Below are positions 29,308 to 32,712 of a stretch of 64,000 nt of DNA, in pieces; position 1 is the stretch's first letter, and every line of letters starts with the position of its first letter. The position numbers were made by a program, and so were the translations under genes. The stretch lies in the NCBI RefSeq assembly GCF_000143415.4, contig NW_003314264.1:3833229-3897228 (forward strand). The letters run 5' to 3'. The notes beneath the pieces were generated by a model. It made no database searches and was not told the DNA's origin. It saw only the letters and a list, made by a program, of their open reading frames with translations. The stretch comes from Selaginella moellendorffii. Lineage: Eukaryota > Plantae > Lycopodiophyta.

Positions 29308-30576
29308 ATGGCGGAGGACGGCGACTACACGGCGGCACTGCGCGGCAGCAACAGCGATCAGTGGCAAGCATTGAAGCCTCCAGCTCCAGCGGCGCCTAGG
29401 TTTGGCGGCAATCCAGGAGCTGGTGGATCATCTTCTTCTTCCGACGGTGCGTGCTACCGCTGCGGGCAAGCTGGCCACTGGTCCCGCGATTGCTCGATGC
29501 GCCCGGCGGGAAATGCAAGTGGAATCCAGCCTCCTCCCGCGATGAATCTCTCCTCCAAGTCTTGCCCTTGTGGAGCTGGGATGTGCGTTCTTCGCACGTC
29601 CAATACTGCGAAAAATCCCGGCCGCCAGTTTCTCACTTGTCCAGCTCCACAGGTAAGCTTCTTTCTTTCTTTTATGTTCTCGCTATAGAACGTAAAGTTC
29701 TTCGTGAAACCATTGGTTCTTTCACGGTTTCTTTAACCTTGTCAACTTTCGCTAACACGTAGTTCTTGCTTGATAGGGCGCGAAGTGCAGCTTCTTCGAG
29801 TGGTGCGATGCCGCAGGAGCACCCTCTACGAATCAGCCACCGCAGGCACAGCAGCCCGGCGAGCCCGAGTTGAAATGCCGCAACTGTAACCAACCTTGCG
29901 TGGTATTCACAGCCAGGACCGAGAAGAACTCCGGCCGCCGGTTCTACAAATGCGTAAGAACCTGTTTTCTTGTGCTTAAAAGCCTTCGATGGATGGTGTA
30001 GAAAAAAGAGGACTGCCACTTTTTCAAGTGGTGTGACGAAGCGTTCGCTCCCTCCTCGTCCCCCGGCTATAAGCCTCCTGCTGGCTATGGAGGCGCGAAC
30101 TACACTGGAGCAGGATATGGAGGTGCTTCTCCCGGCTATGTGAACCCAGGTATCATCCACCACTACTCACCTCTAATAAATCATTTTGCTTAAGCAGGAG
30201 TATATGGAGGCCATGAAAACGTTTCCTCCGGCTATGGCGGTCCAGGTACCATTGAAACACAGAAAAAGCATTCACTTTCGAAACCTGTATAGGCTTTGGA
30301 GGGCCAAACAACACCGAAGGAGGATATGGCGGTCATGGCTACGGTGGCTCTGGTACCTCTCGACTCTCGTGAAAATGCTTTCAGTCCCAGGCTTTTTTGC
30401 AGGGCCAACATACTCGGGAGGATACGGGGCCCGTGGAAACGCCTCTTCCGGCTATGCACGCTCAGGTACCATCTCTCGACCGGTATAAAACTTCCAGCGA
30501 TTTACAAGCTCCTGCAGGCGATGGACACCCGAGCGCCAGTTATGGTCGTGGATACGGAGACTATGGAAACGCGTAG
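29308..30576 (+). CDS. CCHC zinc knuckle plus two GRF zinc fingers plus Gly/Tyr-rich tail protein
   Basis: CYRCGQAGHWSRDC; CPCGAGMC...TAKNPGRQFLTC...CSFFEWCD; CRNCNQPC...TEKNSGRRFYKC...CHFFKWCD; then several short G/Y-rich exons ending GYGDYGNA*. Confidence 0.8.
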
Positions 30577-30738
30577 CTTGCTGAAGCGATCTAGAGATAT
30601 GGATTGAGAGAGGATAGTAGAGAGAAGAATGCTCGTCGAAAGTTTAAAGGTTTGCTGTTAATATTTTGCCCCGGTTTTAATGTATCGCATTTTGGTTCTA
30701 TCTTCTCTGTTTTCTAGGGCTTTCCTTGTGAGGGAAAA

Positions 30739-31492
30739 ATGCAGTCTCTCCGAAGAGCGTGGTCATGGCTCAGGCGTCGCCAACAAGAAGACCAAGGGCC
30801 TCAGCTTTCGGCGGAGGACATGGGTTACTACACGGAGAATTCTTTCTTCTCGGCGCGTGAAGTTGCTGTGCTCTACAAAAAATTTCACGTAAGCTTTTTC
30901 TTCCGTCTCTGTTCTTGATGGTTGGATTCGTTTTTTTTCTTTTTCTTTTTTTTCTTGTCCCCAGGCAATGTGCAAGGAGGGATGGAATGTGCTCACTCAC
31001 GAGGATCTAACGTCCATTGAGGAGATGCTCGCAAATCCATTTGCTCCGAGAATTCTCGAGCTTTTCAGCGAGGACGGAAGCGGGTTCCTGACTTTCGAGA
31101 AATTCGTAAACATGGCGGGCGTGTTCTCCGCAAAGTCGCCACCCGAGGTGAAAATGATATGGGCGTTTGCGCTGTGGGATTTCGACGGCGACGACGTCAT
31201 TGGAGATGGTAAGGCTCTCGACGTTTTTGGTCTCAAAGCTTTGCTTTAAGCTGTTTTAGAAAGCCTTGCAGACGATCTAAAGCAAGGGATCTCTCTCATC
31301 ACGCAAACTGACGAAAGCTCCAATCCTTCGGCTCTTGCCACCCTTGGAGAAGAGCAGATTGACGAGGTCGTGTCCAGAGTCCTGCAAGAGATCGATCCAA
31401 ACAACTACGGGCTAAACTATGCGGACTTCCGAAAAGTGCTACAGAGAATGCCGGATTTCATCAATAACTTCCACATGAACTTTATTGCTTGA
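30739..31492 (+). CDS. CIB (calcium- and integrin-binding)/calcineurin-B-like EF-hand protein, 3 exons
   Basis: LSAEDMGYYTENSFFSAREV; EMLANPFAPRILELFSEDGSGFLTFEKFV; KMIWAFALWDFDGDDVIGDDDL; DFRKVLQRMPDFINNFHM. Confidence 0.8.
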
Positions 31493-31707
31493 GTGCGTAA
31501 GTAGCTACACGTCAGCTTTTCCTCCTAATCTTTTGTTATTGCGAAGGGCCGTTCGTCATTTCTACAGTGGCCGCCACACAAAGGATACTTCGTCTGATCA
31601 TACCCCGTCCTTGCGCCCGTTGCTGCCTAGTTGAAAGTATAAAGGGGATTTCTTGCAACGCTCCTCAAGCGTATTTCTCTCTGTTCTTTCCATTGATCCA
31701 CAGACGC

Positions 31708-32712
<1,005 letters not shown>

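Follow-up and report, generated by a model that had tools for sequence, protein, structure and literature searches.

An expressed CIB-like gene of the lycophyte Selaginella moellendorffii belongs to an old green-lineage subfamily and encodes a candidate partner of the plant TMC channel

In the papers surveyed, the calcium- and integrin-binding (CIB) proteins, or calmyrins, a family with four EF-hands, are regarded as belonging to animals, in the words of one review "conserved from arthropods to humans" (PMC11900603). CIB1 possesses a Ca/myristoyl switch (PMC11900603), and the N-terminal Met-Gly required for myristoylation is found in CIB1-3 but not in CIB4, and is not universal in the CIB family; CIB2 and CIB3 are likely to be myristoylated at this end (PMC11900603). 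The TMC channels of animals, which serve touch and hearing, contain CIB2, CIB3 or CALM-1 as a bound subunit (PMC5491523, PMC11861898). TMC channels themselves reach beyond animals: a single Tmc gene has been described in each of Coccomyxa, Klebsormidium, Marchantia, Physcomitrella and Selaginella (Erives and Fritzsch, PMC7003098); according to the same authors, writing in 2019, Tmc has disappeared from the clade that unites ferns, gymnosperms and angiosperms. In another survey, TMC was present among the sampled plants only in Selaginella (EFJ05970) and Coccomyxa (PMC12806904). The first of these papers contains no mention of CIB, and neither of them ties TMC to CIB. Our literature searches on CIB in Selaginella, CIB in gametophytes, CIB2-TMC in land plants and Marchantia gene identifiers returned nothing relevant.

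We analysed a window of 64,000 nucleotides of the Selaginella moellendorffii genome (contig NW_003314264.1), in which a three-exon gene on the + strand of 30739-31492 reads in translation from an ATG at 30739 to a TGA at 31490-31492. Its product is the RefSeq protein XP_024517853.1 (P0185; 208 aa), annotated as "calcium and integrin-binding family member 3 isoform X2". Each of the three exon translations is found in this protein at the expected place, and the codon split by intron 2 encodes Glu. The features of the gene are collected in Table 1.

Table 1. Features of the CIB-like gene and of its transcripts, in window positions
Feature	Position	Strand	Content and evidence
5' leader intron	30650..30717	+	Single run (X3); links the transcript end of the upstream gene to the leader of the CIB-like gene
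Exon 1	30739..30888	+	Residues 1-50 (MQSLRRAW...KKFH), encoding a basic, Trp/Arg-rich N-terminal helix and the first N-lobe helices; exact match to XP_024517853.1 1-50; RNA-like contigs stop at 30888 and restart at 30965
Intron 1	30889..30964	+	76 nt, GTAAGC...CCCCAG, T-rich; skipped in contigs of three runs
Exon 2	30965..31208	+	Residues 51-131 and first base of codon 132; NPFAPRILELFSEDGSG motif, EF2-like loop, start of EF3
CIB-type NPFxxRI...FSEDG motif	31031..31078	+	ANPFAPRILELFSEDG; alignment of green-lineage sequences
EF-hand 3 loop (DFDGDDVIG...ADD)	31178..31276	+	Interrupted by intron 2; alignments and RNA-like contigs
Intron 2	31209..31259	+	51 nt in the 208-aa form; 42 nt with exon 3 from 31251; 63 nt in the JGI model
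Exon 3	31260..31492	+	Residues 132-208 and TGA; ends with LQRMPDFINNFHMNFIA
EF-hand 4 loop	31394..31426	+	DPNNYGLNYAD; alignment
CIB-type C-terminal PDFxxxFxI helix	31439..31477	+	LQRMPDFINNFHM; aligned to APDFLSTFHIRI of CIB2/3 and to PDFIRTFHIR of CALM-1
Intron directly after the stop codon	31493..31546	+	54 nt; joint 31492/31547 in two runs (X11, X3)

Splicing was read from contigs of public RNA-like runs aligned to 30300-32000, for which four runs were examined. The gene stretch is present in about 20 RNA-like runs from about ten studies, spliced contigs occur in three of the four examined runs, and GT..AG joints are carried by contigs of several studies. The locus is a real, expressed Selaginella gene. 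The last base of exon 2 is 31208, whereas exon 3 begins at 31260 in two runs and at 31251 in the third. A span of 21 nt at intron 2 contains three in-frame AG acceptors, so that exon 3 can begin at 31251, 31260 or 31272, giving an EF-hand 3 loop with seven, four or no extra residues with respect to all relatives. The first choice corresponds to a 211-aa form (P0269) annotated on another scaffold and the last to an older JGI model of 153 aa (P0268, EFJ10589/EFJ35328). No RNA-like contig of the four assemblies supports the start at 31272, which occurs only in that old computed model; the forms with seven and four additional residues are the only ones seen among the four assemblies, and contig assemblies drop rare splice forms. 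The three tandem acceptors could in principle toggle EF3 between an intact and a broken state.

The surroundings of the gene are compact. It is flanked on the contig by plant genes, a GRF/CCHC zinc-finger gene upstream and a phytoglobin gene downstream. According to Pfam, the product of the upstream gene (29308-30576, + strand) combines a CCHC zinc knuckle with two GRF-type zinc ribbons; a Gly/Tyr-rich tail follows. The introns of this gene are very short, about 50 nt (joints 30351/30402 and 30462/30515 in RNA-like contigs). Within 30300-31914, RNA-like contigs cross gene borders. In run X3, the joint 30649/30718 connects the upstream transcript end to the leader of the CIB-like gene, and a transcript of this kind has an ATG at 30629 that is in frame and would lengthen the protein by 14 residues; the X11 contig that carries the joint 31492/31547 extends from the CIB-like gene into the phytoglobin gene. 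Such border-crossing contigs are either read-through transcripts or assembly merges of tightly packed genes. Runs also differ at single bases (30571 G>A, 31619 G>C, 31649 T>C, 31671 G>A, 31879 T>C), and some of them contain both alleles at these positions. These differences fit the two known haplotypes of the genome assembly.

To which family the protein belongs is best seen against solved structures. Exon 2 alone is closest to CALM-1 of C. elegans (E 1e-17), followed by CIB3 and CIB2 (about 1e-13), calcineurin B (about 1e-12) and CBL4 (3e-4), and exon 3 alone also brings CALM-1, CIB2 and CIB3 on top, via the C-terminal PDFxxxFH helix. The full-length XP_024517853.1 aligns end to end with CALM-1 (20-205 versus 17-200) at 100 bits, E 1e-27 and about 31% identity; the scores for CIB2, CIB3 and CIB1 are 76, 75 and 68 bits. 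Calcineurin B reaches at most 64 bits, in partial alignments mostly over residues 35-140, and NCS-1 (42 bits), CHP1 (39), CBL2 (31) and CBL4 (29) fall below, which gives the order CIB, calcineurin B, NCS/CHP and plant CBL. In an AlphaFold model built on a 21-sequence alignment, the N-lobe has a pLDDT of 80-95 and the C-lobe a low one of 43-73, poor at residues 127-157 and moderate elsewhere in this lobe. The ten best Foldseek matches of this model in the PDB are all chains of the CIB family, most of them solved with TMC, with TM-scores of only 0.5-0.6; their titles name CALM-1, CIB2 and CIB3 bound to TMC-1, TMC-2 and TMC1.

The same picture emerges from individual motifs. In the alignment, residues N74, P75, R79, I80, F84 and S85 of ANPFAPRILELFSEDGSG are invariant across green, animal and protist CIBs; N74, P75, R79, F84 and S85 are also invariant in 21 green-lineage sequences. 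At the other end, MPDFINNFHMNF forms the PDFxxxFxI helix and aligns with APDFLSTFHIRI. The first-pass annotation, which read the protein as CIB-like rather than CBL-like, had quoted ANPFAPRILELFSEDG, KMIWAFALWDFDGD and LQRMPDFINNFHM; the + strand translation contains all three, the first two in exon 2 and the last in exon 3, and the scores and fold matches above bear out the reading itself. It had also noted a degenerate last EF loop and the lack of both a C-terminal PFPF/FPSF motif and an N-terminal myristoylation glycine, and rightly so: the EF4 loop is discussed below, a regular-expression search finds neither motif in the protein, and residue 2 is Gln (MQSL start). Most other members of the green group also start without Met-Gly. 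We consider it very probable that the protein is a member of the CIB family. Pfam provides only generic EF-hand models; XP_024517853.1 scores below their cut-offs, whereas the Marchantia protein passes, and an Atlas feature search with exon 2 likewise returned generic EF-hand clusters only. The CIB resemblance is not new, as RefSeq, an NCBI Coccomyxa record and IMG already name such proteins CIB.

CALM-1, a subunit of the C. elegans TMC-1 and TMC-2 complexes (PDB 7usw, 8tkp), is the best match in both sequence and fold. It resembles the Selaginella protein in the NPFxxRIxxxFSEDG motif, in the Asp that closes the EF3 loop and in the C-terminal PDFIxxFH helix, whereas its EF3 and EF4 loops both count 12 residues and those of the Selaginella protein are inserted and shortened, respectively, in a protein without Met-Gly. 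Human CIB2 and CIB3, which serve TMC1/2 as auxiliary subunits (PDB 8z3f, 6wud), resemble the Selaginella protein in motifs and fold at about 75 bits over the full length; in contrast to it, they display an EF4 loop of 12 residues with acidic ligand positions. The green group carries WAFALWDFDGDD where animals have YAFKIYDFNTDN at the equivalent site. The match to human CIB1 (calmyrin, KIP) is weaker than that to CIB2/3, and this protein too has a groove-capping C-terminal helix; its Ca/myristoyl switch cannot exist in the Selaginella protein. Calcineurin B, the next-best family, has in common with it the NP(F/L)xxR motif and the N-lobe. It has no PDFxxxF tail and contains four canonical EF-hands. 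As a candidate identity it is set aside on its partial, lower-scoring alignments and on the non-canonical EF2, EF3 and EF4 loops of the Selaginella protein.

These loops deserve closer attention. Alignment with animal and protist CIBs places a Lys at the end of the EF2-like loop (SEDGSGFLTFEK). In all green relatives, EF3 is a 12-residue loop that ends in Asp (DFDGDDxIGxxD), as in other CIBs, whereas the RNA-supported forms of Selaginella contain four (DESL) or seven extra residues between loop positions 9 and 10. This insertion sits exactly at the intron 2 junction, and the standard length is found only in the old model P0268. In EF4, the loop DPNNYG-LNYAD is one residue short with respect to animal and protist CIBs and has a Tyr in place of the acidic ligand at position 5. 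The same shortening, with Tyr or another non-ligand at position 5, runs across the green group; from the alignments, it is treated as a trait of the subfamily and not as exclusion from the CIB family. Since the only near-canonical loop contains an insertion in each of the RNA-supported isoforms, the Selaginella protein would be under weak metal control or none, and its binding of metal may be weak or absent.

An exhaustive HMMER search with exon 2 over 1.84 billion cluster representatives gave 120 matches at E <=1e-10. The signature of the closest relatives consists of NPFAxRIxELFSEDGSG, VWAFALWDFDGDDxIG and MPDFxxNFRMS. The named members come from lycophytes (Diphasiastrum, Selaginella), liverworts (Marchantia, Mp1g13580; Riccia; Calypogeia), the fern Ceratopteris, Ginkgo (a truncated model), Mesostigma and the chlorophytes Coccomyxa, Myrmecia, Trebouxia, Chloropicon and Pyramimonas. 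Proteins of angiosperms, conifers, Klebsormidium, Chlamydomonas or any named moss were not among the matches of this search, as far as names could be checked, nor among those of word-index searches, where all names were shown. An IQ-TREE analysis of 55 sequences, unrooted because it included no CNB, CHP or CBL outgroup, places the green-lineage proteins on one side of a branch (92/100) and animal, choanoflagellate and other protist CIBs on the other. Within the green group, streptophytes and chlorophytes are separate, and Selaginella pairs with Diphasiastrum next to Ginkgo and ferns. This branching tracks species relationships, which argues for vertical inheritance and not for contamination or transfer. 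Sequence comparison thus supports an old, vertically inherited green-lineage CIB subfamily, whose traits are the lack, in most members, of an N-terminal Met-Gly and the shortened EF4 loop. Two earlier proposals, that the lineage is ancient and that it was lost in flowering plants, agree with these data, the latter as far as the searches reach.

Two other kinds of sequence came up in the searches. A complete three-exon orthologue lies on a 189-kb JGI metagenome contig (sample 3300049217; L002:3359-4798), from an AT-rich, plant-like source genome, and its exon-2 piece is named 'calcium and integrin-binding protein 1' in IMG. This copy may stem from a host plant, perhaps a moss, whose DNA entered a plant-associated metagenome. 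Its exons entered the tree as separate rows and took no resolved position; given such an orthologue in a plant-like genome, absence from mosses is not established. The very long proteins P0002, P0042, P0055, P0059, P0063, P0098 and P0099 (1,660-2,836 aa) are giant multi-EF-hand repeat proteins, in which 6-12 stretches resemble CIB exon 2, with an identity of about 29%.

How does this distribution compare with that of TMC? The CIB-like gene and a reported TMC are found together in Coccomyxa, Marchantia and Selaginella, whereas angiosperms and, it would seem, Chlamydomonas yielded neither of them. Co-occurrence is imperfect in both directions: TMC is reported in Physcomitrella and Klebsormidium, where no named CIB-like protein was found, and a fern and Ginkgo carry the CIB-like gene in a clade for which loss of TMC is described (PMC7003098). 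The TMC match rests on few species. Since seed plants lost TMC and flagellated sperm in largely the same lineages, the two ideas are confounded in land plants. The simplest explanation of this joint presence and absence, together with the CIB-TMC complexes of animals, is that the plant CIB-like protein is a partner of the plant TMC. Judging from published distributions, we tentatively regard the Selaginella protein as a candidate TMC partner, a proposal for which the odds are somewhat below even. On this proposal, a TMC gene would be expected to persist in ferns and Ginkgo.

Several other explanations were weighed. Could the protein be a divergent plant CBL or a calcineurin-B-type sensor that works with CIPK kinases? 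The overall four-EF-hand fold is alike, and CBL2, CBL4 and calcineurin B do appear lower in the fold and sequence lists. In plant CBLs, the C-terminus bears an FPSF (PFPF) motif and the N-terminus a lipid-modified MGC. Both are absent from the Selaginella protein, which has instead the CIB-specific C-terminal PDFxxxF helix, and SOS3/CBL4 and CBL2 score a mere 29-31 bits against the 100 bits of CALM-1. From the ranking in similarity and fold, the missing FPSF-type motif and the missing Gly2, we reject the CBL and calcineurin B readings, the sensor hypothesis being close to refuted. Contamination by animal or protist DNA, or a recent horizontal transfer, might be suggested by the fact that the nearest characterised relatives are animal proteins. 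This idea is refuted by the tree, which tracks green-plant relationships, and by the genomic context: the gene lies between the plant genes described above, and its introns are short, of Selaginella type, and spliced in Selaginella runs.

The role of the protein leaves more room for discussion. It could act as a general adaptor of CIB1 type, binding helical segments of kinases and of other cytosolic or membrane proteins with no special tie to TMC. CIB1 indeed has many partners besides TMC (review, PMC11900603), the gene occurs in a fern and in Ginkgo, for which loss of TMC has been described (PMC7003098), and it is found in assemblies from about ten studies. Such an adaptor would leave the joint presence in Coccomyxa, Marchantia and Selaginella unexplained, and the best sequence and fold matches are TMC-bound CIB2, CIB3 and CALM-1 and not CIB1; we hold this role possible, if rather unlikely. 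The first-pass annotation had favoured a tie to flagellated sperm, in other words a protein of flagellated cells (sperm, zoospores) lost along with flagella. In streptophytes the pattern fits, since liverworts, lycophytes, a fern, Ginkgo and Mesostigma carry the gene and no angiosperm copy was recovered, and CIB1 and CIB4 are required for mouse spermatogenesis (PMC11900603). The gene is carried by several chlorophytes as well. Trebouxia, Myrmecia and Pyramimonas, which have flagellate stages, are among them and agree with the idea; Coccomyxa and Chloropicon, coccoid algae without a flagellate stage, are also among them and speak against it. Moreover, neither Chlamydomonas nor any named moss yielded the gene, and its presence in about 20 RNA-like runs seems unlikely for a transcript restricted to sperm or gametophytes. 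A flagellar role as stated is therefore improbable, and of the earlier interpretation the CIB identity, the old green lineage and the lack of a flowering-plant member stand, whereas the tie to flagellated sperm is weak. The TMC channel gene, with its distribution as published (PMC7003098, PMC12806904), is a closer correlate than flagella and the better lead. The two ideas would be compatible should a plant TMC complex function in motile cells.

Taken as a whole, our preferred explanation, an expressed and vertically inherited gene for a CIB-family adaptor with TMC as its likeliest partner, has in our estimate a probability of roughly 0.6. Like other CIBs, the Selaginella protein would be a small adaptor, in which a hydrophobic groove of the C-lobe is expected to clasp a helical segment of the partner protein and the C-terminal helix to cap this groove, under metal control that is presumably weak or absent. 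The likeliest partner would be the single TMC channel of the plant, and the protein would then serve as an auxiliary subunit of a plant TMC complex. A more far-reaching version is doubtful, yet conceivable: a TMC-CIB complex that predates the plant-animal split and has persisted in green algae, bryophytes and lycophytes, and perhaps also in ferns and Ginkgo, with this gene supplying the plant CIB subunit and the three acceptors setting the integrity of EF3 and so tuning metal sensitivity.

If the pairing fails, the gene only modestly extends the known set of EF-hand proteins in plants, and public databases name it already. The presence of a green CIB subfamily in several of the few plants and algae reported with TMC nevertheless points to an ancient TMC-CIB pairing. 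If this pairing is true, Marchantia, with its gene Mp1g13580, would be a tractable plant in which to ask what the TMC complex does outside animals.
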